Assembly (NCBI GenBank): GCA_037447605.1
Contig: CM074820.1
Coordinates: 682,001-746,000, forward strand
From: Zygnema circumcarinatum SAG 698-1b
Taxonomy: Eukaryota > Plantae > Zygnematophyceae
Reading direction: 5' to 3'
Length of the DNA: 64,000 bases
Of the stretch, positions 3,183-47,789 are shown one piece after another. Position 1 is the first letter of the stretch; the number at the start of each line of letters is the position of its first letter. Both the position numbers and the translations under genes were made by a program. The notes under the pieces are model-generated. The model did no database searches. It saw only the letters and a program-made list of their open reading frames with translations, and was not told the origin of the DNA.

Positions 3183-4122
3183 GGAGACTCAATTCCGTAA
3201 AGGAGCCAGTCCTCAGAAAACTGAAACAAACGGCAGGGAAGAGCAGCATGTAAGATTGGTTATCTTTCCATCCGTCTCTCTCACCTCTCTCTCCCTCTAC
3301 TCCTCCTATCTTGTCCTCTCCTTCCCTTCCTCCCGCTACCCTCGTGCCTCCCTCCCTGGTCCATTCGTCTCCCCCCCTTCGCTCCCTCTTTCTCGTCCCC
3401 TCTTCTACCCCTTCTCCTCCCCTGCCCGCTGCCTCTCCATATAATATCCCCTCCCCTTCTCCCTTATCTCTCCCTCTCCTCCATTCCTGAGCTTCACCTA
3501 CTACCCTCTGCCCTACCTCTCTTCACACCCTCTGCCCCCCTCCCTCGCCCTCTCAATTCAAGAACAGCGCTCACTCTTTCCCTCATAACACTCTCTCATT
3601 CTCTCTCCCTTAGTTCCACTCTCGCTAATTCAGAAGCATTCACTTAACTTCGAATCCCCCCCCCTCTTTCCTGCTCTCGCCTCCACCTCTCAGTTGTGTT
3701 TTCCTAGCTGACTCTCTTTTTCTCCATCTATCGTTCTCTCGCAGTCCAGTCCCACTCCCTCTATCCCTATCCCTCTCTCTTCCTTTTCCTCTCACTCTTC
3801 CCCTCTTAAATCTTCCTCTCCTCCAAGATTTAAATCCTTTCTCCTTGTTTTGCCTCTCCCTCTCTCCTTCTCTTCCTCCTCCCTTCCCATAATCTCCCTC
3901 TGTCACTCCCTCTCCTCTCGCGCTCCTCTCTCCCTCGCCATCCCTCCATTCTGTATCTCCCATTCCCCTCTCCCACTGAACCTCTCGCCCCCTGTCCCTG
4001 CCGTACCTCCCTCTCGCCCACTCTTCCACCCGAGAGCGCAGAGCACAGCCTGCGACTGCGCGCGAGAGAGACAGAGAGAGAGAGAGTGAGAGTGAGAGAG
4101 GGAGAGAGAGAGAGATAGAGAG

Positions 4123-4165
<43 letters not shown>

Positions 4166-4259
4166 GAGAGAGAGAGATAAGGCGAGAGGGGAGAGGGAGT
4201 GGGAGAGACAGGAGGCACTGCGCGCCACGCCAACAAAAGGCCAAATGGGCCCGCCGCCG

Positions 4260-5545
4260 GCTTTATACGCCGCACCCACTGCCCGATCTTTCAGGGCAGA
4301 AACAAATTTCACCTTGATCTGTTCAATGTTTGCACCGTAAGAAGCACGAAACTGCATCTCACACTTGCGAGTGTACGCATTGGCTAATAGACTAGTGCCA
4401 CGTGTAATTTTTTCCACGTGGCAAGAAATAAGTGGTTGAAGTTCTACAAATAATCACAAATCTGTGAAATTTATCGATAAAATTTTTAACCGCATATAAA
4501 ATCAATTTTTTTTTCGGGCAGAAGTCTGCCTGGGGGAGGAGGTTGTGGGGCAGGTGAGAAGGGTCGAACCTTCCAAGGAATTTGGGAGAAAGCGACGGAT
4601 GCCACGTGGTAGACTCTGAATGGTGGGTCCATCAGGAAGCTGGCTCGCACGTGCCAAATTGACGAGGTGTTGCCAAATGTCGGTGCGCCAAGCTCGGTTC
4701 GGTTCAGTTTCTCACGAAAAACCTGATTTTTTAGGTTCGGGATCAATCAATCGGCTGTTACGTCGCCACGTGTAGACATTGTGGAACCTGGGCCGTCGAT
4801 TGTGTAACCGTTTTCCCATTTTTTTCATTTTTTGGACCGCGTGTGGCAGATCTTAGCCGAGGAGGGATCGCTGGTTCTGCCACGTGGACAAAAGACCAAA
4901 AATGACGTAAAATCCAGGTATAAATGAGAAGATTTTCCCGCCCGGGTTATACCAATCACATGCTACCTCGAGTCCTACGTGGCAAGTTCTGATTGGGCAG
5001 TTCTTTAAATTGCTCAAATTTCTTCTATTACTTTCCAGCGAATGCTCACTGAAAAAAATTGGGGGGAGGTGTTATCTGGACGGTCGAGATTCAGGCTCTC
5101 CGGTTGTACCCGGCCCGGCGCTTTCGGATTTCTAAAATACTCATAAGCGGCCAAATTCTGATTTTATTGACCCTTAAATTTCGTGAATTTCAATTTACAC
5201 ACCTTCTTCGTATAGAGACACACCTTTTTAAAACAAAAATCTCTTATGCCATAAAAACCCTAAAATAATATCTGACGATGAAAAGGGGTGTGTGTCTAGT
5301 GGAAAAAGGTGTGTAAATATCGTTTTCCTTCAATTTCAGATTTTAGTTTTGACCCTAAAGCCGCCCAAAATTTGTGGGCCAGATTTGCCAGTAAAGCCGT
5401 GGAAGCTGCATTGTTGGCCACGTGGTGGGATCCCATTGGATATCATCATGTGCGATGCAAGCAGGCCATTGGCCGCTGTAGATACCGAAATCGATTCCCC
5501 TCCTTCAGGACCTTTCCAGGGCCCATGGACCGCGCCACGTGTACA
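4260..5545 (-). promoter_or_regulatory. Putative H+-ATPase promoter: TATAAA (minus, ~4262-4267) plus a cluster of G-box/ABRE motifs
   Basis: CACGTG at 4399, 4415, 4603, 4648, 4767, 4881, 5419 and 5536, mostly in GCCACGTG context; TACGTGGC at 4976; several CCAAT/ATTGG. Confidence 0.55.
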
Positions 5546-6464: not shown

Positions 6465-6899
6465 TCAAGTCTTTCTTCCATCCGTCTCCTTCTGCCACTT
6501 GCCATGCGCGCATGCACAATCCTGCACCATGCAGGCTGGCCCATAAAAGCATGGCGGCAAATGCGCATAATCGCAGGTCTCCCGCTTGGGGCAGCTGTTC
6601 CCATCTTTGCATTCCGGGGCGGGATGTGAGCCCTCACAACTGTTCTTCGTCGGACATTTGGCTGACAGTTGACATGGATTAGGGCGTGGACTAGGGCGTG
6701 CATAGAAGCTGGAAGGGTAACGGGGCTGCGGATGAAGATATTTGCAGTCCTTCTTTCGACAATTGTCTTCCATGTAACATTCGGGGAAGTGCGAGTAGTG
6801 GCAGTGGTCCCGGCGGTCGCAGTTCCGGCCATAGCGACATGGGTTCAGATAGTTCCGCTTGGGAAGTCCCGTCCCTGTGGAAGTGTTCGTGGGATCCAT
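6465..6899 (-). CDS. Tandem CCCH zinc-finger protein 1 (5 fingers, C-x5-C-x4/5-C-x3-H, Nab2/ZC3H14 type), ~144 aa
   Basis: MDPTNT start; fingers CRYGRNCDRRDHCHYSH, CYMEDNCRKKDCKYLH, CQLSAKCPTKNSCEGSH, CKDGNSCPKRETCDYAH, CFYGPACMVQDCACAH. The C-terminus could be spliced differently. Confidence 0.8.
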   Translation of the reverse strand: MDPTNTSTGTGLPKRNYLNPCRYGRNCDRRDHCHYSHFPECYMEDNCRKKDCKYLHPQPRYPSSFYARPSPRPNPCQLSAKCPTKNSCEGSHPAPECKDGNSCPKRETCDYAHLPPCFYGPACMVQDCACAHGKWQKETDGRKT

Positions 6900-6959
6900 A
6901 AGAAAGCGGGAAGGTAATGGAATCCTACTTGTGAAATCAAAGCACATAGGAAAAACCAA

Positions 6960-7288
6960 GCGCTCTCTCGCTCGCTCTCTCTCACGCTTCCCGGCCTCCC
7001 TCTCCCTCTCCCTCTCCCTCTCCTTCCGCCTCCCCCTCCCCCTCCCCCTCGTTTTCTGGCTTTACTGGGGCCACTACTATTCCGGGTCGATGCATGATAT
7101 CGAAATGTCTCGCTGGATTCCTGCATGCCTGCATGCAAAAACTTCCTAATGCTTCTACTTCCGTTCGTGATCGGCCATTGACATTGACATGCATGCCGCC
7201 TCAGCGTGACGCGCTCAATGTTCCTTAACGCCGGCCATGCACGCACATGTCTTAAGCAAACTGCGTTGGAGAATAGAAAAGCCGTGGC

Positions 7289-7330
<42 letters not shown>

Positions 7331-7454
7331 ATCATAGTCGTCCTTCCTCTCTCCCCCCCTCCTGGATCACCTCTCATACACTCTCCCCCCTCTCCCCTCC
7401 CCCATCTCTCCTCTCTCTCCTCTCCCTTTCTCCCTCTCTCCTTCAACCAACACC
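6960..7454. promoter_or_regulatory. Short bidirectional promoter between CCCH genes 1 and 2, rich in RY (CATGCA/TGCATG) motifs
   Basis: Head-to-head starts at 6899 and 7455; at least five RY cores between ~7090 and 7245, flanked by CT-rich UTR-like tracts. Confidence 0.5.
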
Positions 7455-7952
7455 ATGGCGCTTTGGTTTTCCCGCGAGAAAGAAGGTAAAGGCAAGAGCC
7501 CCCAACAAGAAGACAGCAACCCTTACGCCACCGACTACACTGTTCCATGCATCCATGGAAACCTCCGCTCCGTTTGCGCCTTCTCCCATTTCCCTGACTG
7601 CGTAGATGGAGCGAGCTGCAAGAGAGTGACCTCCTGCCAATACACGCACCCTCCCCTGTGCCCCGAAGGGCTGCGCTGTACGAAACCCTCCGGCTGCCAA
7701 TATTGGCACCGCCCACCTGCCTGCAAAGAAGGTGCCACGTGTCGCAAGGTGGCGGCCTGCAAGTATTGGCATCCTCCTCTCTGCCGGGATGGGCTCGCCT
7801 GCAAGAAGAGGATGCTGTGCAGCTACATGCACATTCCGTTTGCCGTTGTGTCTAACGGAACGGTGGAGCGTAGAGAGAGGGAGGCACTGTCTATGTGGGA
7901 GGGAGAGGGGTCGATGGGTCAGCGGCGAAGATTTGGAGGGCAATATTATTAG
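7455..7952 (+). CDS. Tandem CCCH zinc-finger protein 2 (1 degenerate + 4 intact fingers), 165 aa as an unspliced ORF
   Basis: DYTVP followed by CVDGASCKRVTSCQYTH, CPEGLRCTKPSGCQYWH, CKEGATCRKVAACKYWH and CRDGLACKKRMLCSYMH with HPP linkers. The 3' end is uncertain (strong donor AG/GTACGT at 7979). Confidence 0.8.
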   Translation: MALWFSREKEGKGKSPQQEDSNPYATDYTVPCIHGNLRSVCAFSHFPDCVDGASCKRVTSCQYTHPPLCPEGLRCTKPSGCQYWHRPPACKEGATCRKVAACKYWHPPLCRDGLACKKRMLCSYMHIPFAVVSNGTVERREREALSMWEGEGSMGQRRRFGGQYY

Positions 7953-8834: not shown

Positions 8835-9240
8835 ATGGATCCTTGTGTTGCATGCGGCTCCCTTGTTAAAGTCAATACCATGGACCTTTGCACTGCATGC
8901 TGTTTTCTTGATAAAGTTAAGGTCATGGACCTTTGCACTGCATGTGGCTCCCTCGATAAAGGCAAGGCCATGGACCTTCGCATTGCATGCTGTTCCCTTG
9001 ATAAAGTCAAGACCATGGAACTGTGCACTGCATGCGGCTTCCTTGATAAAGTCAAGGCCATGCAATGCACGCGACTCTCTTGGTAAAGTCAAAATCATTA
9101 CCTTTGCAATGCATGTGGTTTTCTCGATAAAGTCAATACCATGGACCTTTGCACTGCATGCGACCCCTCGATAAAATCGAGACCCTGGACCTTCACATTG
9201 CATGTGGCATACCCCTCTTTAAAGTTAAATTCATGGATCT
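8835..9240. repeat. 45-bp minisatellite, ~9 diverged copies
   Basis: Unit approx ATGGACCTTTGCACTGCATGYKGYTYYCTYGATAAAGTCAAGGYC repeated head to tail. Confidence 0.9.
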
Positions 9241-9854
9241 GGTCCCTCTCTAAAGTTAACGCCATGCAGCACGAGGCTCAGCCCTGGCCATGAAACCATG
9301 AGCGAAACTGCTTAATACATGCGAGAATTCGAAAAGGAAAAAAAACGCTGGGCATTCATAATTCATAATTTCGTAATTATGAAATAGTAATACATAATAA
9401 TAATTCGTAATTCATAATTTATTCATAATTCATAATTTTTGTTTTCACAAAAGGGAAACGCCTGAGGGCCCACAACCCGGCTCCTGGCGGTTCCCGAACC
9501 GGCGGGTTTAAGACTTTGCATGCAGCGGTGATAGAAGGGACCCATCTGCATGCGACTTTGAAAAAGAGCCATGCAGCGGCGACATTCATCGATTTCTACT
9601 TAAATAATTTGCTTCCTAATCTTTTGCCGCATGCAGGATGAACGAAGCCAATACCATACATAAGCAGCTCCCCAAAGTAACATACCCTTTACTTTTCTGC
9701 ACATCTCATCTCCAGAGAAGAAGCCAAACCTACTTCTCATTACTGCTCCTCTCTCTCTACTTCTGAAAAGAAAAGCCAAGGTGAAAACTTACAGGAGGTC
9801 CATCCAGGCATTTCAATGTGATAGTTGGCTCTAACGAACCTCAGAATCATCGCT

Positions 9855-12062
9855 ATGAATAGGATGGAGGGCCAGATCAGTAGGCCGAGTTCGAAGGATT
9901 ACACTCAGCCTTGCAAGCATCACACGGCTTGCAGAAACCGCCTCGACTGCAGCTACATGCATTTTGCGAGCTGCAGAGAGGGAGGTTCATGCAAAAATTT
10001 CGCCTGCACATATGCGCACCCTCCCCCTTGCGAGAAGAGTTCAGATTGCAGGAACCCCACTTGCAAGGCATGGCATAAACCTCAAATGTGCCGCGACGTA
10101 CCTTTCTGCAGGAAGGTGGGAAAGGGGACCTGTCCCTATTGGCACCCCCCCATATGTCGGAACGGCGATGCATGCAGAAACAGGGAGCTTTGCAAGTATG
10201 CGCATCCTCCTCCTTGTAGAGCGGGGGCGAATTGTGAGGTCCCGGAATGTACATATTGGCATGAAGGGACTCAGATTCAGAAGGTTCAGACACTTCTTTT
10301 GAAGAATCCGAGGACGAGTTGCAGATCTGGCGACGCTTGCCGCTTTAAGCATCACTGCAAATATGAGCATCCGAGCGCTAATCTCGTCAGTGTTGAAGGT
10401 GGGCTCAGAATACAAGTTTTTTTTCTTTGGGGTTCATATCTCTTTTCTAGTTAATGTGGCTTTCGCACGAATGCAGCTGCAGGGCTTCAATTGTGTTTCG
10501 TATTTTGGGTGTTTAGACACTATGGAGGAGAGGGTGTTTTTTTCTTCTGAAGGTTACTTTTTGGCAGATATAGGGCTTGATGAAAGATTATAAACTTTGT
10601 TAAAGGCTCGAACTAAAAGGTTTCTTTGTGGGTTTTTTGTTGCAGATATTGCTCCCTTCCAGAAACTGCTCACGAAAACTTGCATTTCTGAATATATCGG
10701 CAAAGGCCAGGACGCTCCGGGACTTGCACACACGTGGGGGAGTTGACCCACTTCTCTAACCCTCGTTAAAGGAAAGGACATGAGGTCTCGATAAAGTCAC
10801 ACGCTTACCATTCATGATGACAATGTGAATTATATAAAACAGATAACTTGAGACAGCTGTCCCACCCCTCTTGCCTTAGCCTTTCTTTTAAACACCCTCA
10901 TTTGAATCTTTTTATAAGCTTCTTACTTTTGTGCTTAGGTCCTTTGCCACCAATCCCTCGTGGTTCCCCATGATGCTGATTTTGTCCATGTACATTTGAT
11001 GGCATCATCGCCATCGTGAGACCAATGCCATTTTCCCTTTTTCTTATAAGAAACCCGGATGCTGAATGTGCAGGGGATTCAAAGTAGAGCGCGTGTACTA
11101 CATCCTGAACCCCATGGTCGAGCAGCGCTACAAGGAGCATGTGGGGTCTATTAAAAAAAATTTACATGAATGTCCCCTTGTGGCGGGCTGTGCTACAAGA
11201 CCCCATCTTCCAAAAGAGGTTGTTGGGAATTTTGACTCCCACGAAGCGCCATTGCTGCATGGGAGTAAGCACAGACTCATTCAGAACAAGATAATCGACG
11301 AAGGTCTGAATACTGAAACTGCGCAGCAGGGCGGCCTCTTTGGGAGGGCGATTTACTTTACGGAGCATTCGAGCAAAGCAGACGAGTACACAGACCCCGA
11401 TTACAAAGGTCAGTTACAAGGAGAGTTTGCTTTAAAGTTAACTTTGCTTTGTTTGAAAAAGGACGTGCAGGGAGAGTTTTAGAGAGAATAAAGAGGACTT
11501 AAATTTGGTGGTTTTGTTTTCTGCGGCAGGGAGGCATGCCGTACTGCTTTCGAAAGTCTATGTTGGGTGGCCCCACCAGGCGACACGTGGCAGCCACAGC
11601 TTGACCACCCCGCCTTGTGTGCAGCAATGCACGGCGGCGACATGCAGTCACATGCGTCATGACTCGATCATTGGCCTCACGAAGGTGGGCACACACTTCT
11701 GGGGTTGTTCGTACATTGTTTCTAGAGCTCTTGTTGTTCTCGTTGGTGTTCCCTGGTCTAACGGTTGTTGATGTTGTTCTTCCATTGTAGTTTTGATTGT
11801 TATTCTTGTTACATCGTTCAAAGGGTTGTCATTGTTGTTGTTGTTGCATGGATCAAATGTTCACACTTGGTGTTGTATGGCCTTGTTGTTCCTTTGACCT
11901 TAACAAGCAAATGGCCCATTTCTTCATGTTTACGACACTGTGGGTGCGATGGCGATGCAGAGCGACACGCCGGCGGCGTATCTGAACAAGTACCGCGAGT
12001 TTTGCGTGTATGACGGCCGGCAGTGCATGGCCCTCTACCTCATCCACTACCACCGAGTGTAG
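9855..12062 (+). CDS. 7x CCCH zinc finger - PARP (ADP-ribosyltransferase) catalytic-domain protein, 407 aa. Exons 9855-10398, 10646-10733, 11074-11408, 11530-11684, 11961-12062
   Basis: All four introns are GT-AG with matching phases (1, 2, 1, 0), and exons sum to 1224 nt ending in TAG. PARP signature: EAPLLHGS...GGLFGRAIYFTEHSSKADEY...VLLSKVYVG...HDSIIG...YREFCVYDGRQCMALYLIHY. Confidence 0.9.
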
Positions 12063-12126
12063 AAAAACACATGCAATAAAAGCCCGGATTCTGCACAAGC
12101 TTAGACCAATTAGGAGCCTCAAGTGT

Positions 12127-12326
<200 letters not shown>

Positions 12327-13634
12327 TCAGATTGACAGAGCCTTTATGAAATCTCTCTTTCCTGTACATGAATGAATGATGATCTGTGATGGTGACCCGC
12401 CCCCTATCCCTCGAATCCTTCAAAAAAAATGGTACTTGGATTATAGCACTCAGATTCAAGAACGTCCTCGCCCTTTGTTAACCTTCTTTAGGCTTAGCGC
12501 CGTTGAAGGTCGGGGCCTTCAAGCGGTTGAAGATTTGCGTAAAGACCATGAGCCCCCCCCTATCAACAAAAGCGATTCGCACGCTCTCCCACGTCTCCTT
12601 CTCACTATCAGTAATCACAGGCCGCATCTTGGAAGCCCTCACATTACACAGCTCCTGCAACCTTCAATCCATCTAACCCCAAAACGTCTCCTTCAATAAT
12701 GAATGTTTCAATGGTCTTATTTCATAAACATGCTGAAAAAAGAAAAGCAATATTAAGCAGTAAATAGGAAGGTGGGCCCCGCTAAGGAAGGTGGATAATA
12801 AAGCTCTCACCTTGCAGGGGAAAGGAGCGCGGAAACACTGACAGGAATCGCAACTTCCGTTGAGATTTCCTGCATCGTTGGCATGGAATCACATGGAGCA
12901 CATGAAAGTCCATCTCTTGGAGAATTTAGACAAGCCAAAAAGGCCCATCACTGCATCCATGGCAACACAAACTACGCATCATCTTATGATTTTGAGGGAT
13001 CAGAAATGTATGGTCTACACAGTTGTGAACCACTGTGTATGCAGCCGTGCATACAGCAGCGTATGCTCCGATTAAAGGAAGACTTTACGAGCCGTATGGA
13101 CTGCCTAGAAGAGAGATTTGTGACTTTCTTTGAATGGCATGATGCAAGACCAGGTGAAGATGATTCCAAATTCTGAATGCAGCACACATTTCAAAGAACA
13201 CCTCAAACACAACATTCAGAAGAGTGCAGATAGAGGTTCTGATATCAACCTTTCGCTTGACCTGCCCTCATTATCTGCCTTCCCCCGTCTCTAAGCGCAC
13301 AGAGAGAGAAAAAGAAAATGTGGGGAGGGGGAGGGGGAGGGGAGGGAGAGGGGGAGGGGAGGGGGAGGGAGAGGGGAGGGGGGAGGGGAGGGGGAGGGGA
13401 GGGGAGGGGGAGGGGAGGGGGAGGGGGAGGGGAGGGGGGAGGGGAGGGGGAGGGGAGGGGGAGGGGGAGGGGAGGGGGAGGGGGAGGGGAGGGAGGGGGA
13501 GGGGAGGGGGAGGGGGAGGGGAGGGGGAGGGGAGGGGAGGGGGAGGGGGACGGGGAGGGGGAGGGGAGGGGGAGGGGAGGGAGGGAGAGGGGGAGGGATG
13601 AGAGCCAGAGGGGGAGAGAGGTGGGACTGCTCAC

Positions 13635-13874
13635 CTCCTCCGTGGTGCCTGTATAGCACAGCAAGCAGTACACCTCCTGCTCCGCTTCAAGGTGAGGTGT
13701 TACGCTAAAAAATCTTCCGCATGTTCTCAAATTGCAATACACGTTGTAAAATTCCAAATTGCTGCACAGGCGCTTTTCTCTTAAAGGGGGAAACTGTTCA
13801 CAGAACTGGACCCATGGAATAATTTCAACAGCCGGGGCAGAAACAAAAGCTTGCTTTCGCTTTTCTGAAGCCAT
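13635..13874 (-). CDS. First coding exon of a putative Cys-rich (zinc-ribbon-like) protein gene divergent from RPS14; downstream exons uncertain (~12680-13270)
   Basis: MASEKRKQ...YNVYCNLRTCGRFFSVTPHLEAEQEVYCLLCYTGTTEE (80 codons) ends at a strong GAG/GTGAGC donor; non-repetitive composition. Confidence 0.5.
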
Positions 13875-14009
13875 TCCTTCAGAATTTGATGGAAATCTAT
13901 CGGCAGAATCTTCTGCACTTCCTGAAGATGTGAGCAAAATTGTTTCAAGAAAATCGCCCAACAGTTTTATTCAAGACACATCTCTGTCATATTCTACAAT
14001 ACTCCAACT

Positions 14010-14110
14010 CAACCCCAAACCCTAAAACCCCAAACCCTAAAAACCCAACCCTACCCCAAACCCTAAAAAGGACCTGAACCCTGGAGGGCAGAGCTCTGCG
14101 AACCCTAAAA
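14010..14110 (+). promoter_or_regulatory. Telo-box (AAACCCTA) cluster upstream of RPS14
   Basis: Three exact AAACCCTA plus variants about 200-290 bp before the RPS14 ATG. Telo-boxes are typical of plant ribosomal-protein promoters. Confidence 0.6.
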
Positions 14111-14301
14111 CGCATCCTGGAGCAGAGGGGGTACGGCGAATCGCCGTTCAATCCCAGCCGTCGATGCGGAGAAATCGTTGGATCGGACGGTTGAGCGCGG
14201 CCCTCCCCCGGAACAAAGAGCGGCGCGCGCCCTAATGTGCGCTCTCTCCGCCGAACGATTCCGCGCTCGCCCTCTGCGGGGAAAGGGAGGCATCCGCCGC
14301 C

Positions 14302-18664
<4,363 letters not shown>

Positions 18665-18884
18665 GGGGCAGACGGAGAACGGAACGGGATGCGTACATGG
18701 AACGGGTGTCGGCTCATGCACGGAACTGTTCGCCTTTGTGTGCTTTCCTGCGTGTACATCTCTCATTAATGAAATGGTAGTGGAGCCAACTTCACCCTCT
18801 TCGCTATGCCCCCTCTCCCTCTCGGCCCCCCTCCCCCACACCCCTGTCGCTCCTTCGTTCTCTTCCTATCCCGTCCCCCTCTCA

Positions 18885-19262
18885 CTTTCCGAAGCCTCTT
18901 GTTTCATCTCCTCTCCCCCCCTCTCTTTCTGAAGCGTCTTGTTTCATCTCCTCTCCCCCCCTCTCTCTTTCTGAAGCCTCTTGTTACATCTCCTCTCCCC
19001 CCCTCTCTCTTTCTGAAGCCTCTTGTTTCATCACCTCTCCCCCCCTCTTTCTTTCTGAAGCCTCTTGTTTCATCTCCTCTCCCCCCCTCTCTCGTTCTGA
19101 AGCCTCTTGTTTCATCTCCTCTCCCCCCCTCTCTCTTTCTGAAGCCTCTTGTTTCATCTCCTCTTCCCCCCTCTCTCTTTCTGAAGCCTCTTGTTTCATC
19201 TCTTCTCAACCCCTCCCTCTTTCTGAAGCCTCTTGCTCCATCTCCTCTCACCCCCTCTCTCT
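18885..19262. repeat. 42-bp minisatellite, ~9 copies
   Basis: Unit CTGAAGCCTCTTGTTTCATCTCCTCTCCCCCCCTCTCTCTTT. Confidence 0.92.
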
Positions 19263-20032
19263 TCTCTTCTCCTCCCAGTCTCTCCTTCTCTCCTTGTCTC
19301 TCCTTCCCTCCTTATCTTGCTACTCCGCTGTGACTGCATCCATGATGGGTCTTTTGTGGATAGCATACATGAGGTCTGGCGTACCCGTACGCGTTTTCTT
19401 TATTTTGGACAATGGCGTTAGAATTCAGAAATTCGTATTCATGAGATGTGCTGGCTTTTCTTGGGAGGCATTTCTTGTTTTTTTAGTCCACGTGCTTGCA
19501 TTCTTCCATTTTCATTTGAAGAAAAAGAAAACCGAATTGAGAGTCCTTCAGGATAGAAAAAGAAAGTGAAAGACCAAAGCGAAGACCAAATACTCGAAAC
19601 CGAAAACTGGGACATTACTCCATTATTTCTTTTGCCACATGCCCGCGACAAGTAGGCCACCATGCGGTTATGTCCACCACTGAGAGTCAGACAGACACAG
19701 ATAGACAGATAGGCGGATATGTTCATATAGACAGCCTGACAAACACTGATTGATATTACTTAAAGACATACACTTGGTCACAGAGACAGACACACACACA
19801 GCACACAGAAGACACATATAGACACAGACAGCCAGAGACAATACAGGAACAAAGAGCGGCACACACAGACATCAGAGGTGCTACTAACAATCAAAGACAT
19901 GGAGCTCCAGCTAGGGCACCCTGCGGCACACGCTAAACAGAACAATAATTTGCATGGAAAGCGAAATTCTCACACGCACACGGGGAGGGCTGGCTCTGGG
20001 AAGAAGCAATCAGGCACTCCATTTATGTGTCA

Positions 20033-33481: not shown

Positions 33482-36400
33482 TGTTGTACAGCGCTAGAGG
33501 CCGTACAACTGTTTGGGACATAGACTCTCTGAGCCATGGCCCAGACTCCAGCGCTGACGCCGCTTGACAGAAGGATGGTCAGCGCCGGGCGCTGACGCGA
33601 AAAAAGTCCTAAGTTAAATCATAGTACCGTGACGTGACGATCCGAAACGAAATGTTCGGGCGTACGGACGACGGCGAAACATGACGCGACAAAGGAGCGC
33701 GGAGATCAAAATGTGAACGAAGGCACGACGTGACAAATATTCGCGCGCGACTCGGAACCGAAACTTAGGGCGAGTTTCAGTTCGGCGCGCGGAAAGGTTT
33801 CACGCACACCGAGAAAGCTCCGTTTCGAAAAACTCGCGCGAAGGCGGCGGCGCCAGAGCGCACTCACTCTGAGTGCGCTCCCCTCCCACTGAGCCTTGCC
33901 ACCCTGTTCAGAGACCTCTGCACAGAGGCGCACTAAGGCGCACTGAGAATGCCAAGGCGGACACGAGCCCACGTAGGGGTCTGTACAGCCTGTGCATGCA
34001 GGCGGCCGTGACCGGGTCACGGCCCGGCGAGCTACATAAGCTGCTCCACGGGGAGAAGCTTAGTATCCAGAATCACCCGAGCCTTTATGGGGAGGCTCAT
34101 GCTTACTGCTACTGCACTGGGAGCAGTGCTTCCTGAGTGTAGGTAGCTGTCGGAGGAAGGGTGTGGTAGTCAGGGGCAGCCGCAAGCAACGCTTAGTAGA
34201 GAGCATAGGATAGAGCCAGAGCCGGGAGTAGTTTGCTGCCTGCGCCTGTTGTATCTTTCATTGTATAAAGAAGAGGTTTTCNNNNNNNNNNAAACCCCGT
34301 GAAGAGAGGCGGCGCACCGGGAACATTCTGCAACTACTGCAAGCGGAAGGGACATCTCGAAGCCGATTGTCGTACCAAGAAGGCAGCCCAGGGTGGAGGA
34401 CGACCCAGCGGTGTCCCTCACGGTGACAAGAAGAAAGGCAAGGAGATGTTATGTTTTCAGTGCCAGAAGCCGGGTCATCTGGCCCGGAACTGTCCAGGGT
34501 CAGGGTCGGCTCAGATAGAGGCGAGTAACATGGCAAGTGATGCCAAGCCAGCGGAATTTGTAAATCAAATCTTTATGAATAAAGATAATCTTTCACCGTG
34601 GCTCATAGACTCTGGTGCCTCTAAACATATGTGTGGTGATAAGTCTCTCTTTACAGAGATGACGTTGCTTGACCAGTCACGAGCCGTGACTTCGGCAACC
34701 GGAGACGAGGTCTCCGTCACCCATGGTGGGTTCGTCCAGCTGTCCCCCACAGGAGAAGGGACAGCTTCCAAACTCAGAATTGGTAGTGTGCTTCATACCC
34801 CAACCCTGAAGAATAACTTCTTCTCGGTTAGTCAGATTTGCAAGGGCGGATACGAGGGGGTCTTCCGGGAGGAGTCCTGTAAGATAGTGCACAGAAAAAC
34901 CAGGAAGGTTCTTTGCAGAGGAACACAGAGGGATGGACTCTACTTCCTAGACTGGCTTCCTTCTAGCAAGGAATCCGTCTCAGCCGTGCGTACTGGGAGT
35001 ACACGCAAAGGATCGACGCGAGCCTCTCACGGCCCGTTCAACGATCGGGAGCCTGCCCGCGCCACGATCAGCGCGACGAGCAGAGGACCCGCGCGCAAGG
35101 GAGCGCGCGAAGGCAGTGAGTCTCATCCTGCTAGGGGACGCCCAGATAGCGGATCTAACGACTGCAGTCCTGCCCACGACACGGGGAGCAGCGACAAAGG
35201 AGCCGCGCCCGCCTCGGGGAGGGAGCGCGAAGGCGGGGCCGCGCGCGCTTTGGACAGCGCGCGAAAGGACCGTAGGGACGCGAAACCGAAAAGTGGAATT
35301 TGCGATGGTACGGCAACTTCCGGAACTAGTGACGTGTCACAAAGTTCCGAAGCGACGCGCCGTGACATGACAAGTCGAAATATTCAGAAGAGTACGGCGA
35401 CCGACTTCATTGAAGAACAGGAATCCGTACATGAAGCTTCAGACGCGGCGCAATTGTGGCACCGCCGACTTGGTCATTTGTCGTTTAGTGGCCTGGAGGC
35501 CCTCGCGACACAGAGCCTGGTCCGGGGACTCCCCTCGACGAAGATCTCGACACCAGAAGCTGTCTGCCCCGACTGCGCGGCGGGCAAGATACACCGGCAC
35601 CCTTTCAAGAGCTTTGGAGCGGAGAAGCATCGCGCGTCCAAGCTGCTGGAGTTGGTCCACAGCGATCTATGCGGACCGATCACTCCCGAGTCAAAGGGCG
35701 GTTCAAGGTATTTCATCACCTTCCTTGATGATTATTCCAGGAAGATATGGGTAGTACTGCTGAAGTTTAAAAGTGAGGCGTTTGAGACCTTTCGGACCTG
35801 GCAGTTAGAGGTAGAAAGGCAGACCGGAGAGAAGGTGCAGAGGATCCGAACGGACAATGGAGGTGAATACAGGTCCCTCNNNNNNNNNNAATTCTCTGCT
35901 CACCTCAAGTCACTCGGGATTCGACACGAGTTCACCGCTCCCTACAGCCCGCAAAGCAACGGCGCGGCTGAGAGGGTGAACCGAACCCTCGGTGACATGG
36001 CAAGAGCCATGCTGAGTGAGTCCCCCTTCACCCTCGATTTTTGGGGAGAAGCAATACTCACGGCAGCTTACATCCGGAACAGGTGTCCTTCCAGTGCCCT
36101 GAAAGATGAGAAGAAAGTACCCGAGGAAATGTGGAGTGGCAATAAGCCTACAGTTCAGCACTTAAGAGTCTGGGGCTCGAAGTGCTGGATAGCGGTTCCA
36201 AAGGTCAAGTTAGATACAAAGTTTAGCCCGAGAAGCGAGTTCGGCTACTTCCTCGGCTACAACGCCGACAGCTTGACCTACAGGGTCTGGAACCCTTCCA
36301 CGCAGAAGGTTATGTCAAGCCGTGACCTTCAAGTCGACGAGAATTCCAAGGGGGAGCAGCAGATGCGAACAGGTGTGGAGCCACCTCCCGACATTGAGTT

Positions 36401-39384
36401 CCTTCCAGTAAGGGACATCTTTGGGAGTGAGTCAACTTCACCCCCTACCACTGCCCCCTTGTTTCCAGCGGCATCGGAGTCGCAAGAAGAATTCGCACGG
36501 CGCCCGGAGGCGCCGCATGATCCCTCCCCGACACCTCAAGAGGAGCTGCCCGGAGGAGAAGAGCCCGAAGACGACGATTTTGACCAGGAGTCCACGGAGG
36601 AAGAAGCAATTGAGGCACCGGCACCACGTACCTGGATTCCACGCCACGGTATGGATCCACCCTTGTATGCAAATGCAAAGGGGTTCACTCCGAACTACGG
36701 CGACAAGCCACCCTACAGAGATAGGCATCAACCGAAATGGTTCGGTAGAGGAGGACCAACGAGGAGGCCGACGAGAAGGAGAGAGGAGCCTGAAGAGAGA
36801 GCTCCCCTTGACTCCGCCGATTTTGCGGGAATGGCGATCTGCCTCATGGCACACGAAGGGGAGCCGCAAACGTACTCCGAAGCGTTGGAGTGCGATGATG
36901 CGGCCAAGTGGAAGGTGGCCATCAAGAGTGAACTCGACAGCCTCATGGAGAACGGAACGTGGCGGCTGGAGCCGCTACCTCCAGGCCGCAAGGCCATAGG
37001 CTGTAAGTGGGTCTTCAAAATCAAGAGGAAATCAGACGGGAGTGTAGACAGATATAAGGCGAGGCTAGTGGCGAAGGGATTTGCGCAGAAATTTGGCATA
37101 GATTACTCGGAAACGTTCGCACCAGTCGTCAAGTTTAATTCCCTGCGATCTCTGATTTCCATTGCGGCTGAAGAAGGAATGTATGTCCATCAACTGGACA
37201 TCAAGACAGCCTTCCTCTACGGGGATTTAGAGGAGAGCATCTACATGAAGCAACCGGAAGGGACGGTTGAACCAGGAGCCGAGCACCTGAGCTGCAGGCT
37301 TGTGAAGAGCCTCTACGGGCTCAAGCAAGCTCCAAGGATCTGGTATCAAAAGATACACGAACTGCTCTTGATGAATGGCTTCACCCGCTTCCAAGCAGAC
37401 CACTCGGTCTACAAGACGGGAGAAGGAGCGGCTCAGATGTTCGTCGGCATCTACGTCGATGACCTTATCATCGTGAGCGCTTCAATGGTGAGCATTCAGG
37501 GCCTCAAGGACCTGCTGAGAAAGAGCTTTCAGATGAGTGATCTTGGACCTGCGGAGTACCTCTTAGGAATTCAGCTTAAGAGGGGAAAGGATAGCAGCAT
37601 GTTCTTAAGCCAGGAGAAGTACGCTAGGGAGGTGCTAGCACGCTTCAGAATGGAGAAGTGTACCCCGTGCTCCTCCCCCATGGACGGGAGCACGCAGCTC
37701 AGCGCGGACATGAGCCCGCGGACGGCAGCGGGGAGAAAGGAGATGGAGAAGATTCCGTACAGGTCTGCGATCGGCAGCCTGATGTACCTCATGGTGGGAA
37801 CGCGCCCAGATCTCGCCAAGGCCGTGAGTACGGCCAGCCGGTACATGGAGAATCCGGGGGTACAACATTGGGAAGCGGTTAAGAGGATCTTTCGATACCT
37901 CAAAGGTACGCTTCATTATGGAATCCGATTCGAGAGGGGGAGCGGCAGCGAAGTGTACGGATACACCGACGCTGATTGGGGAGGTGACCCGGATACGGCC
38001 AGATCGACATCTGGATACGCGTTTCTGAACGCGGGCGGCGTCATTTCTTGGAGTTCGAAACTGCACGAAACGGTGGCGTTATCTTCTACCGAATCTGAGT
38101 ATATGGCCGCGTGTCACGCAGCCAGGGAGGCCGTGTGGATCGCGCTCTTCTTTGATGAGTGTGACCGACCACAACTCCCGGTGCAGATTCTGTCGGACAA
38201 CCAATCTTCGATCGCGCTCATTGAGAACCCTGTATTTCATCGGAAGAGCAAGCATATCAAGATCCAGTACCACTTCACGAGAGAGTTAGTGGATGCTGGA
38301 AAGAGATCGGGCGCGCCATTCGCATTTTATCTACTTATTACCGGGCGCAGATATGCTTCAATTTAAGGGAGTTCGGGACCTATTAGTGTGGAGGAACAAT
38401 CACTTCCTCGATTGGGACCCTTATCGCGGCTCAAATTTCAGTAGGGATTGCTGGTACAAAATGGCCAAAGGCCGCATTACAACCGTTGGGGACATGTAAT
38501 TCTCTTAGGATATGAAGGACCTAGGACTTAGGGCGCTGACGCCGTTTACGCGATGGTCGGGCGCCGACGCCAAAGTTCGGAGGTTAACCACGCCGTACCG
38601 CTGACACGGACCAAACGAAATGTCGGGCGCATTTTACCTACTTCGGCGGAGCGACGCCACTAAGGAGCGCTGAGATCGGAATGTGAACGGAGGCGCGACG
38701 ACAAATATTCACAGTGACTCGAACTGAAACTTAGGACGAGTTTCAGTTAGGCGCCGCTGAAAAGTTTCGCTGCATTGAATCGGTGCCGCGTTTCGAAAAC
38801 TCAAGGCGCTGAAGTTGGGCGCGGGCGCCAGAGCACTCACTCTGAGTGTGCTCCCTCCCACCGAGCCATGCCACCGCGTGCAGAGACTTGCACAGAGGCG
38901 CACTAAGCACTGAGAATGCCATGGCGGACACAAGCCCACGTAGGGGTCTGTACAGCCTGTGCATGCTGGCGGCCGTGACCGGGTCACCGCCCGGCGAGTT
39001 GGGCATAAGGCCTCCGCTGGGAGAAGCTTAGTATCCAGAATCACCCGAGCCTTTATGGGGAGGTTCATGCCTACTGCTATTGCACTGGAAGCAGTGCTTC
39101 CCGAGTGTAGGTAGCTGTCTGAGGAAGGGTGTGTGGTAATAGGGCAGCCGCAAAGGCCGCTTATAGTAGAGAGAGCGTGAGATAGAGCCAGAGCCGGGAG
39201 TAGTTTGCTGCCTGCGCCTGTTGTATCTTTCATTGTATAAAGAAGAGGTTTTCGGCCGGTGGGCTTTTCTCTTACACACTGTCTCTCAGTTCTTGCTTGG
39301 CTCACGGTAGTCATCATGGCCGAGAACAACACGGGAGAAGACACGACCAGAGGGGGCTCAGTTTTTGACCCCTCAATCTCAACA
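33482..39384 (+). mobile_element. Ty1/copia LTR retrotransposon (family D), near full length, TSD CAACT. 5' LTR 33482->34281 (gap); 3' LTR ~38449-39384
   Basis: TGTTG...CAACA termini; CAACT at 33477-33481 and 39385-39389; LTR sequences shared at both ends. Confidence 0.95.
34299..38366 (+). CDS. Copia gag-pol polyprotein (2 zinc knuckles, PR, GAG-pre-integrase, IN, RT, RNase H); N-terminus lies in a gap
   Basis: CNYCKRKGHLEADC, WLIDSGAS, LWHRRLGH, HSDLCGP, RTDNGGEY, YKARLVAKG, SLYGLKQAP, YVDD, GYTDADWGGD. Confidence 0.95.
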   Translation: MKRGGAPGTFCNYCKRKGHLEADCRTKKAAQGGGRPSGVPHGDKKKGKEMLCFQCQKPGHLARNCPGSGSAQIEASNMASDAKPAEFVNQIFMNKDNLSPWLIDSGASKHMCGDKSLFTEMTLLDQSRAVTSATGDEVSVTHGGFVQLSPTGEGTASKLRIGSVLHTPTLKNNFFSVSQICKGGYEGVFREESCKIVHRKTRKVLCRGTQRDGLYFLDWLPSSKESVSAVRTGSTRKGSTRASHGPFNDREPARATISATSRGPARKGAREGSESHPARGRPDSGSNDCSPAHDTGSSDKGAAPASGREREGGAARALDSARKDRRDAKPKSGICDGTATSGTSDVSQSSEATRRDMTSRNIQKSTATDFIEEQESVHEASDAAQLWHRRLGHLSFSGLEALATQSLVRGLPSTKISTPEAVCPDCAAGKIHRHPFKSFGAEKHRASKLLELVHSDLCGPITPESKGGSRYFITFLDDYSRKIWVVLLKFKSEAFETFRTWQLEVERQTGEKVQRIRTDNGGEYRSLXXXXFSAHLKSLGIRHEFTAPYSPQSNGAAERVNRTLGDMARAMLSESPFTLDFWGEAILTAAYIRNRCPSSALKDEKKVPEEMWSGNKPTVQHLRVWGSKCWIAVPKVKLDTKFSPRSEFGYFLGYNADSLTYRVWNPSTQKVMSSRDLQVDENSKGEQQMRTGVEPPPDIEFLPVRDIFGSESTSPPTTAPLFPAASESQEEFARRPEAPHDPSPTPQEELPGGEEPEDDDFDQESTEEEAIEAPAPRTWIPRHGMDPPLYANAKGFTPNYGDKPPYRDRHQPKWFGRGGPTRRPTRRREEPEERAPLDSADFAGMAICLMAHEGEPQTYSEALECDDAAKWKVAIKSELDSLMENGTWRLEPLPPGRKAIGCKWVFKIKRKSDGSVDRYKARLVAKGFAQKFGIDYSETFAPVVKFNSLRSLISIAAEEGMYVHQLDIKTAFLYGDLEESIYMKQPEGTVEPGAEHLSCRLVKSLYGLKQAPRIWYQKIHELLLMNGFTRFQADHSVYKTGEGAAQMFVGIYVDDLIIVSASMVSIQGLKDLLRKSFQMSDLGPAEYLLGIQLKRGKDSSMFLSQEKYAREVLARFRMEKCTPCSSPMDGSTQLSADMSPRTAAGRKEMEKIPYRSAIGSLMYLMVGTRPDLAKAVSTASRYMENPGVQHWEAVKRIFRYLKGTLHYGIRFERGSGSEVYGYTDADWGGDPDTARSTSGYAFLNAGGVISWSSKLHETVALSSTESEYMAACHAAREAVWIALFFDECDRPQLPVQILSDNQSSIALIENPVFHRKSKHIKIQYHFTRELVDAGKRSGAPFAFYLLITGRRYASI

Positions 39385-41631: not shown

Positions 41632-43817
41632 TGTAACAGCTGAAATCTACCTTCTTCAGCCTGCGCGGAATTGCACTCAACCAGCACTCAGCAAAACAGA
41701 GTTCAGAATGAGAGGGCTTCAGAGAGAGAGAGGGCGCTTCAGAGTCGGGAGCAGCCCGGGATGGCCGTGCAACCGTATGCCGGTACGTTGGTTGGGTGAC
41801 GACAGTCACCCACGCCCCTTTACGCTTCCCCCGTCGAACCTCCTACCAGCATGGAGGATTGGAAGCGAGGGAAACATCCAATAGCGGGAACCGCCCGCGT
41901 GTTATTCCTCTCTAACTTCGAATGAATTGAGGTGGCCTGCTTGTCTGGAGAATGCTGCGCCCGCATTCGCTGGCCTGCCCCGCCGCTTGGCCTTATGGCC
42001 AGCGCCCGCCCGTATCTGCATCCAGTCTGCTTGATGCCGGATCCCTTGTAGCCCTTGGTCAAGCCCAGCCGATCCCGATCCGTACCCGCGGTAACCCATG
42101 CTATGCGGACGACGGTTACGTTCCAAAACGTAAGGAAGATGTGGTCGGGATTCCGTGATCCCTCGACCACATCGGCGACGCGATACATATATGTCTCAGT
42201 ATACCGCGCCGCATCGAACCCTTGCAACCTTCGCAAGGTTCGATCCCAGGACCCTTCCNNNNNNNNNNAGGTGGTCCCCGACGCCTTGGCCACTCGGCCC
42301 GCGCCCGGGGTGAGAGTACTAGGACGGAGCGCGCCCTAAGTACACCTCCCGTGGGTGACTGTAGCGTTTCGCTACATTACTCCCCCCCTGTGAGGATGTG
42401 AACGCCCTCGTTCACGTGTGTGGGGTAGTAAAGGCAGCTCGTAGTTTCAACGGCACGCGTCGAACTCTACGTGATAACCGGGAGGGCTCAGCGATAATCC
42501 CGGTCAAGTCCCTTTCCGAGTTGCGCGGGGACGGCTCAGGAACCCCCCGTGCCGCCCTCGCCCGCTCTCCTGCGGCCTGCGCCTCCCAGTACAAGTTGAT
42601 GAGCTCCTGGCAATTGGTTAAGTTGCCCTCGGCTTCCCATGTGCTATGTTCAACCCCATAGCCCAACCACTTCACGAGGTATTCGTGACGGGAAGAGCGA
42701 CCCTTTCTCACAATACGGTGGGCTTGAATGGTTTCAACTTCGTACTCAAGTTCACCTTCAAGTTCCACTGGTGAGGGAGGTGGTTGGATCCTCCCATCGC
42801 TGCGGTAGGCCTTTAGCAATCCCACATGAAAGACCGGATGCATTTTCATATGGGCTGGTAAATCCAACCGGTAAGCGACCTCATTGATGCGCTTCATGAC
42901 CCTGAAGGGCCCAATGAAGCGGGGCCATAGCTTACGTGTTCCGCCATAAGCTTTGAGTCTCAAGTTCGCCGTACTTAGCAACACCTCATCGCCTTCGTTG
43001 AAGGTGAGTTGGGTACGGTGACGGTCAGCATAGGCCTTTTGTCGCGACTGGGCCGCTAGCAGGGTCTGCCGTGCCCTCTGCAGCGCCTCAGACATTAGCC
43101 GGACAAAAGATCTGACTGCGGGAGGTTGAGTCCCATCAGTTCCTCTCAGCTTCCAAGGATCGGGGGTTCTGTGGACGCCCATGTTCCACGGATCAGGGGG
43201 CTGATCCCTTGGTTGCAGGGGATTTAGAGGATGCTGGCCAAAGTTCAAGAAGAAAGGGGTGGTACCAATGGACTCCTGGTAAGCATTATTGATGGCATAC
43301 TCCAGCCTTTGGGGCGAGTTCGTCCCACTATCCGGGGTGGGTCCACATAATGCGGAGAATCCTCGGGGATCCTGTTCACGGATTAAGATACGTACCGTAG
43401 GTTTGGGTGGAAAATTTGTACTTTCAGCGCTGCTTGGTCCCCAGCGATTTTGAGCACTTCCGTCCAAAAATGGCCGGTGAATCGTGGATCACGGTCAGAC
43501 ACAATTTCTGACTGAAGACCATGCTGGCTCCACACTTTGTCAACATACAACCGTGCAATCTCGTCGGCCCCAGCTGTCTTAGTAGTTGGTGCAAAATGCA
43601 CCATCTTGCTGAGCCGATCGACAAAGACGAGGATGGAGTCATGCCCCCGAGGTGTCACAGGAAGATCTGTGATCAAGTCCATACCCACACTATCCCATTT
43701 CCGAAAAGGAGGTGTGAGGGGATGCAGCTGGCCAGGGATCCTGCCAGTGCGGGGTTTGTTTCGTTGACAAGTTGGACAAGCGAGTACATATGCTTTCACA
43801 TCCCTCGAGAGTCCAGG
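41632..43817 (-). mobile_element. Family A chromovirus 3' part: integrase-GPF-chromodomain, PPT, 3' LTR 41632-42376
   Basis: KLWPRFIGPF, HPVFHVGLLK, YEVETIQAHR...EYLVKWLGYGVEHSTWE; PPT 42377-42390. Confidence 0.94.
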
Positions 43818-46800: not shown

Positions 46801-47779
46801 CGAAAGAAACCGAAGAGATGCGAAAGCAGTTGGCAACTTTACGTGAAAAGGGCTGGATAGAACCCAGTCAAAGCCCCTTTGGGGCGCCCATCTTGTTTGT
46901 TGGGAAGAAAGATGGTTCGTTGAGGATGTGCATTGATTATCGCGCACTCAACAAGATCACCGTAAAGAACCGTTTTGCTTTACCACGTATTGATGATCTG
47001 TTGGATCGTCTTCACGGCGCCAGAGTGTTTACTTCACTCGACCTTGCTCAGGGGTACCATCAAATCCGTGTTACGGAAGCTGATGTGCCAAAAACTGCGT
47101 TCCGGACGCCGATTGGTCATTTCCAATATAAGGTGTTGCCCTTTGGATTGACTAATGCTCCGGCGACTTTCCAGGCTGTCATGAACGAGATGTTCTACGG
47201 CATGGACGAGTTTGTTTTAATTTACCTCGATGATATCCTTGTCTTCAGTAAGACAGAGGTGGAACATCTTGAACACGTTCGGAAAGTGTTTGAGACCCTG
47301 AGAAAACACCAGTTTTATGCCAAGAGGAAAAAGTGTCACTTCATGCAACGTGAGTTGCTCTATCTTGGGCATATCTTGAATGATCAGGGTCTTCGGCCTG
47401 ATCCTGCCAAAGTTTCAGCGGTAGAAACTTGGGCGCCACCGACTGACTTGCATCAGTTGAGGTCCTTCTTGGGATTTGCGAATTATTTTCGTAAGTTCAT
47501 CCAAGGGTTTAGTAAGTTGGTTACTCCCTTGACTAATTTGACACGTTCCGGTGTCCCCTTTACATGGACCCCTGAATGCCAGCATGCATTCGAAGGTGTG
47601 CGCCATGCACTTGTTACCGCACCCACTCTCCGTTTAGCGGACCCGTCCAAGCCTTATGAAGTGGTTTGTGATGCTTCGGGATTCGCCTTGGGTGCCGTCT
47701 TGTTTCAAGATGGCCAACCTTTAGCGTATGAAAGCCGCAAAATGAATCCCGCTGAGCGCAACTATTCTGCAACAGAACA
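43818..47779 (+). mobile_element. Third family A chromovirus copy (LTR, gag, pol PR-RT-RH) inserted antisense in the integrase of another copy; truncated at a gap
   Basis: TGTAGCGAAACGCTACA LTR start at 43818; pol ORF 45843-47807 with LLDTGA, YLDD and VVCDASG. Confidence 0.92.
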
Positions 47780-47789
47780 NNNNNNNNNN

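Follow-up and report, generated by a model that had tools for sequence, protein, structure and literature searches.

A probable fusion of Nab2-type zinc fingers to a tankyrase-like PARP domain in the streptophyte alga Zygnema circumcarinatum

Proteins that join Cys-Cys-Cys-His (CCCH) zinc fingers to a PARP domain have so far, to our knowledge, been described as an animal feature. We asked whether such a protein is encoded at positions 9855 to 12062 of a 64,000-nucleotide stretch of the genome of Zygnema circumcarinatum SAG 698-1b (GenBank assembly GCA_037447605.1, contig CM074820.1, positions 682,001 to 746,000 of the forward strand; this whole stretch is hereafter the window) and, if so, whether it is kin to the animal proteins. 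An earlier, sequence-only reading of the window had proposed a five-exon gene here, with seven fingers and a PARP domain. Our analysis confirms that observation: the gene model, the seven fingers and the PARP motifs are all present. We consider it reasonably probable that the locus is one intact nuclear gene of about 407 residues, in which seven Nab2-type fingers are followed by a tankyrase-like PARP domain, and that its product would be an RNA-tethered ADP-ribosyltransferase.

A five-exon frame that opens with seven Nab2-type fingers

Recomputed from the sequence, the five exons give a frame of 407 codons with a single terminal stop. All internal boundaries are GT...AG, and the cumulative exon phases (1, 2, 1 and 0) are compatible across the four introns; the introns and the 407-residue frame that had been proposed were found at exactly the positions given for them (Table 1). 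The ATG at 9855 is preceded, ten codons 5', by two in-frame stops; the context of another ATG, at 9864, is the better of the two. Database searches were made exon by exon, and the joined translation was used for frame and numbering only.

A strict motif scan of exon 1 recovered all seven of the C-x5-C-x4-7-C-x3-H fingers that had been described, with all 28 zinc ligands intact. The middle spacing is x4 or x5 in six of the fingers and x7 in one. Nineteen residues precede finger 1, and the linkers within fingers 1 to 6 are 3 to 4 residues long and mostly proline-rich. The likeness to Nab2/ZC3H14 fingers that had been suggested is borne out by two kinds of comparison. The Pfam zf-CCCH_2 model (PF14608, Nab2-type) matched exon 1 in four stretches with 44.8 bits (cutoff 25.8), and the best matches among solved structures were the yeast Nab2 fingers 2LHN and 5L2L (E ~3e-5), followed by Nab2 4LJ0. 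A model of ZAP-like fingers reached only 9.8 bits (E 0.74).

In Nab2, the stacking partners of an adenine are the basic residue that directly follows Cys1 and an aromatic one at Cys3+2; where Cys1+2 is aromatic too, the finger takes up a second adenine (Kuhlmann et al., PMC3874189). Six of the seven fingers in exon 1 have Lys or Arg after Cys1 together with Tyr at Cys3+2. The Cys1+2 position is never Phe, Tyr or Trp; in finger 1 it is His. Because the basic residue and the Tyr are present and the aromatic residue at Cys1+2 is absent, we infer that these fingers take a single adenosine each, as yeast finger 6 does. From this conserved residue code, the array is predicted to bind single-stranded A-rich RNA.

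A tankyrase-like PARP domain in exons 2 to 5

The Pfam PARP model (PF00644) recognized exon 3 alone with 31.7 bits (cutoff 26.7) and matched exon 5 weakly over its last 22 positions (177-198). Both families thus exceeded their Pfam cutoffs in the profile comparison that the sequence-only reading had proposed as a check. A HMMER search with exon 3 among 1.84 billion representative sequences (E <= 0.001) returned only 40 matches, all of them PARP-domain proteins, the best at E 4.3e-9; those looked at more closely are of the tankyrase-like type described below. Since the matches were so few and the best of them so modest, we conclude that the domain is divergent and that the library holds no product of this locus.

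The exon structure of the PARP domain was checked without use of the gene model. A 224-position profile was built from 35 homolog domains and searched against the three forward frames of positions 9700-12200. The profile mapped in order across exons 2 to 5, covering positions 4 to 223 of 224, and its matches break where the junctions had been proposed. Homologs are contiguous across the junction of exons 2 and 3 (P0002, 563/564; P0010, 417/418; P0020, 98/99), and 13 homolog matches span exon 5 to the stop codon or to one codon short of it, at or beside the last residues of the homologs. Because the profile and the homologs run in order across exons 2 to 5, the junctions 10733/11074, 11408/11530 and 11684/11961 are verified independently of the model.

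Alignment to the clade consensus, residue by residue, includes LLHGS, GGLFGRAIYFTEHSSKADEY and KYREFCVYD...HYHRV-stop. His273-Gly-Ser, Tyr305, Ser310/311-Lys, Tyr316 and Glu387 align with the residues of the nicotinamide adenine dinucleotide (NAD+) site of tankyrase-2, and the His-Tyr-Glu (H-Y-E) triad that had been read as intact (LLHGS, AIYFT and YREFCVY) is present, in register with the His, Tyr and Glu of tankyrase. When the homologs were aligned back to the 64-kb window, no second PARP-like sequence was found elsewhere in it. By homology, exons 2 to 5 encode a complete PARP catalytic domain with its NAD+-site residues kept.

Among solved structures, exon 3 matched tankyrases 1 and 2 only. 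A profile of 20 sequences of the clade scored tankyrase at ~117 bits, ahead of PARP15 (100), PARP12 (95), PARP14 (83), PARP1 (70) and PARP10 (68). Named relatives come from Guillardia theta (L1JFS3, L1I7X7), Paulinella micropora and dinoflagellates, and the remainder from environmental eukaryotic contigs; clusters in the ESM Atlas, which are leads at best, suggest that haptophytes are also among them. The nearest relatives are ~30-40% identical over exon 3. Their architectures comprise the PARP domain alone (258-290 residues), a kinase-PARP combination, PARP behind an N-terminal hydrophobic region or putative membrane segments and, once, WWE-PARP. The gene shares with this clade an N-terminal helix (TC..(Y)IG.G.D), the motifs of the catalytic site and a C-terminus of the form ...Y(K/H)RV; it differs from the clade in its CCCH fingers, and no green-lineage species is among the named members. 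On sequence similarity, we assign the PARP domain to a tankyrase-like clade that is otherwise seen in protists and environmental eukaryotes.

CCCH+WWE+PARP proteins have been placed in animals only (Clade 3E), with Ile or Val in place of the catalytic Glu (Citarelli et al. 2010, PMC2964712), which agrees with the contrast that had been drawn with PARP7, PARP12 and PARP13 as carriers of WWE domains that have lost the Glu. PARP13/ZAP, PARP12 and PARP7 resemble the gene in having N-terminal CCCH RNA-binding fingers and a C-terminal PARP fold. However, Clade 3E fingers are C-x7-8-C-x5-C-x3-H, whereas the first spacing here is always x5, and Clade 3E has one or two WWE domains between fingers and PARP, whereas the gene has no Pfam WWE match and just ~12 residues from finger 7 to the start of the profile match. 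The gene also keeps Glu387, and its catalytic domain is nearer to tankyrase than to PARP12 by the clade profile. Finger type, PARP clade, missing WWE and kept Glu together rule out membership of the ZAP/PARP12/PARP7 family. Hence, of the "ZAP/PARP12-like" label given to the locus earlier, the CCCH-then-PARP layout stands and the family kinship does not. We conclude that the resemblance to animal CCCH-PARPs is convergent; the independent assembly that had been supposed is upheld by the placement of the PARP domain in a tankyrase-like protist clade, and not in the animal PARP12/13 clade, and by relatives that have no CCCH fingers.

Tankyrases 1 and 2 offer the closest solved catalytic domain and, like the gene, have an intact H-Y-E triad and a GG.FG..IYF.E.SSK..Y stretch, and no helical regulatory domain of the PARP1 type. 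They differ in having ankyrin repeats, a SAM domain and a zinc-binding Cys/His loop in the catalytic domain. Set against the clade profile, this loop is inserted in tankyrase-2; the gene has no insertion there. Tankyrases proper occur in animals only (Citarelli et al. 2010, PMC2964712). The gene is not one of them, since Pfam finds only CCCH fingers upstream of its PARP domain and the zinc loop is missing. Exon 4 does contain a Cys/His-rich stretch of its own (11623-11667, C-x3-C-x4-C-x-H-x2-H), which includes the 5-residue insertion relative to the clade. As a counterpart of the tankyrase zinc site it was ruled out: it is part of another loop and amounts to no more than a 5-residue insertion.

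The fingers resemble those of Nab2/ZC3H14 in type, in being packed closely in tandem, with linkers of 3-4 residues, and in the basic and aromatic positions that contact adenosine. The gene differs from Nab2/ZC3H14 in lacking a PWI-like N-terminal domain and any RGG- or Q-rich region, in fingers that are all of the predicted one-adenosine kind, and in its C-terminal enzyme. An orthologue of Nab2/ZC3H14 was ruled out, with only 19 residues before finger 1, no other Pfam domain and no full-length relative found by sequence. Among plant proteins, PARP1/2/3 and RCD1/SRO share the PARP fold and the green lineage with the gene, which in turn has no WGR, regulatory, WWE or RST domain in Pfam searches; the missing domains and the low score of the solved PARP1 catalytic domain (~70 bits, versus 117 for tankyrase) rule out a plant PARP1/2 or SRO protein. 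The PARP clades recorded from land plants are Clade 1 and Clade 2, plus Clade 6 in moss (Citarelli et al. 2010, PMC2964712). A Nab2-type finger joined to an enzyme of ADP-ribose metabolism has a precedent: the poly(ADP-ribose) glycohydrolase (PARG) of Entamoeba dispar carries such a finger, and is listed beside a rotifer PARG with poly(ADP-ribose)-binding PBZ fingers (Perina et al. 2014, PMC4245714). By its description this protein is an eraser rather than a writer, and has fewer fingers than the gene.

No record of a Nab2-finger-PARP fusion was found among the 1.84 billion representatives (searched by PARP similarity, with more distant PARPs out of reach), a word-based collection, the ESM Atlas or the literature searched. 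Clusters in the Atlas were finger-only or PARP-only, again leads at best, and the literature yielded neither a tankyrase-like algal PARP nor a combination of zf-CCCH_2 with PARP.

Table 1. Features of the candidate gene, profile matches and finger-only paralogues (positions in the window)
Feature	Position	Strand	Remarks
Exon 1	9855..10398	+	Start codon and seven-finger array, 181 residues; ends in phase 1; GC content at third codon positions (GC3) 0.57
Finger 1	9912..9962	+	C-x5-C-x5-C-x3-H; Lys after Cys1, Tyr at Cys3+2
Finger 2	9972..10019	+	C-x5-C-x4-C-x3-H; Arg, Tyr; CREGGSC resembles yeast Nab2 CREGANC
Finger 3	10029..10076	+	C-x5-C-x4-C-x3-H; basic/Tyr pair missing in this finger alone: Cys1 followed by Glu, Cys3+2 is Ala and Cys3+3 is Trp
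Finger 4	10089..10145	+	C-x5-C-x7-C-x3-H; Arg, Tyr
Finger 5	10155..10205	+	C-x5-C-x5-C-x3-H; Arg, Tyr; best Pfam zf-CCCH_2 stretch
Finger 6	10215..10262	+	C-x5-C-x4-C-x3-H; Arg, Tyr
Finger 7	10320..10370	+	C-x5-C-x5-C-x3-H; Arg, Tyr; 19-residue linker from finger 6
Intron 1	10399..10645	+	247 nt; donor AAG/GTGGGC; acceptor with T-rich tract and CAG; its removal would make the fusion
Exon 2	10646..10733	+	PARP domain begins here, with its first helix and the TCISEYIGKGQD motif; lacks a start codon
Intron 2	10734..11073	+	340 nt; high-copy dispersed repeat inside, ~10926-11040
Exon 3	11074..11408	+	NAD+-site core, comprising His-Gly-Ser, a Gly-rich loop, a Tyr, Ser-Ser-Lys and a further Tyr
His273 codon (LLHGS)	11258..11260	+	Triad residue 1; aligned with the His of tankyrase FHGS
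Tyr305 codon (AIYFT)	11354..11356	+	Triad residue 2; second stacking residue, Tyr316, downstream in SSKADEY
Intron 3	11409..11529	+	121 nt; donor AAG/GTCAGT
Exon 4	11530..11684	+	Strands from the centre of the PARP fold; Cys/His-rich insertion of 5 residues compared with the clade
Intron 4	11685..11960	+	276 nt; donor AAG/GTGGGC
Exon 5	11961..12062	+	Last strands and catalytic Glu; C-terminus ...HYHRV-stop (relatives ...YKRV)
Glu387 codon (YREFCVY)	11997..11999	+	Triad residue 3; Glu of the clade REF motif, aligned with the Glu of tankyrase-2 AEYVIY
AATAAA	12075..12080	+	Candidate polyadenylation signal; begins 13 nt past the final stop
Profile positions 4-30	10654-10734	+	E 1.4e-5
Profile positions 31-146	11075-11416	+	E 2.7e-27
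Profile positions 143-191	11526-11687	+	E 8.8e-6
Profile positions 182-223	11931-12059	+	E 7e-11
Finger-only paralogue	7455..7952	+	Open reading frame of 165 residues; 4 strict fingers; 38% identical to exon 1; zf-CCCH_2 42 bits
Finger-only paralogue	6465..6959	-	Open reading frame of 164 residues; 5 fingers; 33% identical to exon 1

The exon 1-exon 2 junction and the rival explanations

The junction that would make the fusion, 10398/10646, lies outside the cover of homology; it is supported indirectly, by phase, donor, composition and the missing start of exon 2. Because there is no ATG in its frame, exon 2 must receive a phase-1 donor. Among combinations of upstream ATG and GT that keep the frame, only two donors are plausible: AAG/GTGGGC at 10398 and AAG/GTTACT at 10552. 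The former is identical over nine bases to the verified donor of exon 4, and has a G at +5 in common with all three verified donors. Verified exons have a GC content of 0.49-0.60 and a T content of 0.19-0.23, versus 0.38-0.43 and 0.32-0.41 in verified introns; at 0.38 and 0.40, positions 10399-10645 are intron-like. If exon 1 is instead read through its donor, the resulting 18-codon tail has a GC3 of 0.22 (T 0.46), versus 0.57-0.65 in the coding parts, and the drop falls exactly at the donor. No AATAAA occurs in the 245 nt past the alternative stop at 10454. We regard the splicing of exon 1 to exon 2, that is, the fusion itself, as likely.

Several results weigh against this splice, or against a working enzyme behind it. 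Among the sequencing runs searched, no RNA run matched the locus; the four best-matching runs are genomic DNA, and their contigs continue through the introns without differences. None of the 40 library matches has a CCCH motif, and no CCCH Pfam domain is listed for the further relatives. A collection of 5.8 billion sequences held no scorable relative of exon 1 of 100-317 residues, and proteins containing exon 3 or exon 1 were absent from the large collections searched. The presence of the H-Y-E triad proves neither activity nor polymer formation. Upstream of exon 2, a short alternative first exon (ATG at 10471 or 10522, donor at 10552) is open and also ends in phase 1. Finally, the adjoining finger-only paralogues exist as single open reading frames, and each half of the gene could work alone.

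The last two points suit an arrangement of two transcription units, or of two promoters: a finger-only gene running from 9855 to the stop at 10454, and a PARP-only gene starting at ATG 10471 or 10522 and spliced through the donor at 10552. The existence of PARP-only relatives of 258-290 residues, and of the fusion in no relative, also favours such an arrangement. However, the rival donor has a C at +5 where the verified donors all have G, positions 10399-10645 are intron-like throughout, and the GC3 of the read-through tail is 0.22. Moreover, two independent genes would leave 67 nt between the stop at 10454 and the ATG at 10522, which gives no room for a terminator and a promoter, and no polyadenylation signal follows the stop. 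Searched for as exact sequences, neither the read-through product (9855-10451) nor the neighbouring paralogue returned a record, the annotation of this genome being apparently outside the collection. We hold two separate units to be unlikely. It is less probable again that the locus is a chimeric by-product of local duplication, in which a PARP copy came to lie behind a member of the finger cluster and is now silent or decaying, without function. The three-gene finger cluster in a retrotransposon-rich region would fit such an origin, as would the lack of a matching RNA run and of an orthologue in the collections searched. Decay, though, is hard to reconcile with 407 codons in five exons without a stop or frameshift, with intact zinc ligands and NAD+-site residues, with a coding-like GC3 in both halves, and with a PARP domain that stops exactly at the conserved C-terminus of its clade. 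Because the finger paralogues are just 33-38% identical to it, exon 1 appears to be old and still intact.

A further alternative keeps the gene and changes its ligand: the fingers would read poly(ADP-ribose) (PAR) and not RNA, so that a writer would bind its own product and spread or seed PAR. PAR is itself an adenosine polymer, and Nab2 fingers read adenine by stacking and by hydrogen bonds to N6, N1 and N7, with few backbone contacts (PMC3874189); a Nab2-type finger occurs in the PARG of Entamoeba dispar (PMC4245714), and the Glu that the gene keeps is required for chain elongation by PARP1 (PMC2964712). On the other side, ZAP is reported to bind PAR through its WWE-holding region and not through its RNA-binding fingers, and the proposal is drawn purely from two gene fusions. 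We know of no experiment in which a Nab2-type finger bound PAR, and consider this alternative very improbable. The reading that we favour remains a single gene whose fingers would bind RNA.

Genomic neighbourhood, proposed role and significance

The two finger-only paralogues are divergently oriented, have the same finger order and, with the candidate fusion gene, form a three-gene cluster of Nab2-type fingers. A six-frame scan of the window found 16 strict CCCH motifs in the gene and its two neighbours, and 7 scattered elsewhere. In the minus-strand paralogue, two of the five fingers have no aromatic residue at Cys3+2 and three have no basic residue after Cys1. Between the paralogue at 7455-7952 and the CCCH-PARP gene lies a 45-bp tandem repeat (8849-9208, ~8 copies, 73% matches), which yields spurious Cys-rich open reading frames on both strands, and a 7-bp ATTCATA array follows at 9354-9437. 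Beyond the gene, a (CT)99 microsatellite (12128-12323) begins 66 nt past the stop codon and is probably part of the 3' untranslated region or immediately past it; similar CT/GA-rich tracts occur at ~3640-4420 and 7000-7400.

An element of ~100 bp within intron 2 (10926-11040) is present at very high copy in four genomic runs of the organism. Its summed contig depth is ~10,000-20,000, versus <50 in the flanks, and its copies, 90-95% identical, have many distinct flanking sequences; there is no second copy within the window. These properties suggest a dispersed short repeat, resembling a miniature inverted-repeat transposable element or a short interspersed nuclear element. Farther away, a nest of long terminal repeat retrotransposons, both copia and gypsy, occupies 26000-49000. 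It includes an apparently intact Ty1/copia polyprotein reading frame of 1355 residues (34299-38366, + strand), a Ty3/gypsy chromodomain integrase (42412-43467, - strand) and Ty3/gypsy pieces with near-duplicate, opposed reading frames for reverse transcriptase/RNase H (45843-47807, + strand, and 47762-48754, - strand). The reading frame at 472-1593 on the minus strand encodes an E1-E2 (P-type) ATPase domain. Positions 14001-16000 are strongly skewed (GC 0.60, GC skew +0.63, AT skew +0.42), and are probably a purine-rich low-complexity tract.

We propose that each finger would hold about one adenine of single-stranded A-rich RNA, for example in poly(A) tails, and that the enzyme would thereby be kept on messenger ribonucleoprotein particles. 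The PARP domain would then use NAD+ to ADP-ribosylate itself and nearby proteins, and possibly RNA ends, adding either mono- or poly-ADP-ribose; the modification may alter mRNA fate or the formation of condensates. Tankyrase-1, PARP12, PARP13, PARP14 and PARP15 are the PARPs reported from stress granules. By analogy, a role in cytoplasmic messenger ribonucleoprotein particles would fit, stress-granule PARPs being the closest solved relatives of the domain. For the antiviral or anti-retrotransposon defence that had been suggested for the locus, we found no supporting data, and the retrotransposon nest at 26-49 kb is merely part of the neighbourhood. We put forward with considerable doubt the broader proposition that the green lineage independently made an RNA-guided, tankyrase-like and Glu-bearing PARP that, placed on poly(A) tails, adds ADP-ribose, possibly as polymers, to proteins of these particles or to RNA ends and so controls mRNA, viral or retroelement transcripts, in convergence with animal ZAP/PARP12, or, failing that, that Nab2-type fingers read PAR.

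PARP domains are known for their promiscuity, and animal CCCH-PARPs act in antiviral defence and in stress-granule biology. If our reading of the locus is true, it would represent a second independent assembly of such a protein, in an alga closely related to land plants, with another class of finger, one of known adenosine specificity, and with the H-Y-E triad kept. The coupling of RNA recognition to ADP-ribosylation would then be a recurrent solution, and a little-studied tankyrase-like clade of PARPs would be extended into the green lineage. A protein of ~45 kDa that has neither WWE domains nor ankyrin repeats would also offer a tractable test of whether RNA directs or activates a PARP, and of whether Nab2-type fingers read PAR. 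If they do, Nab2-type fingers would be a new class of PAR reader.

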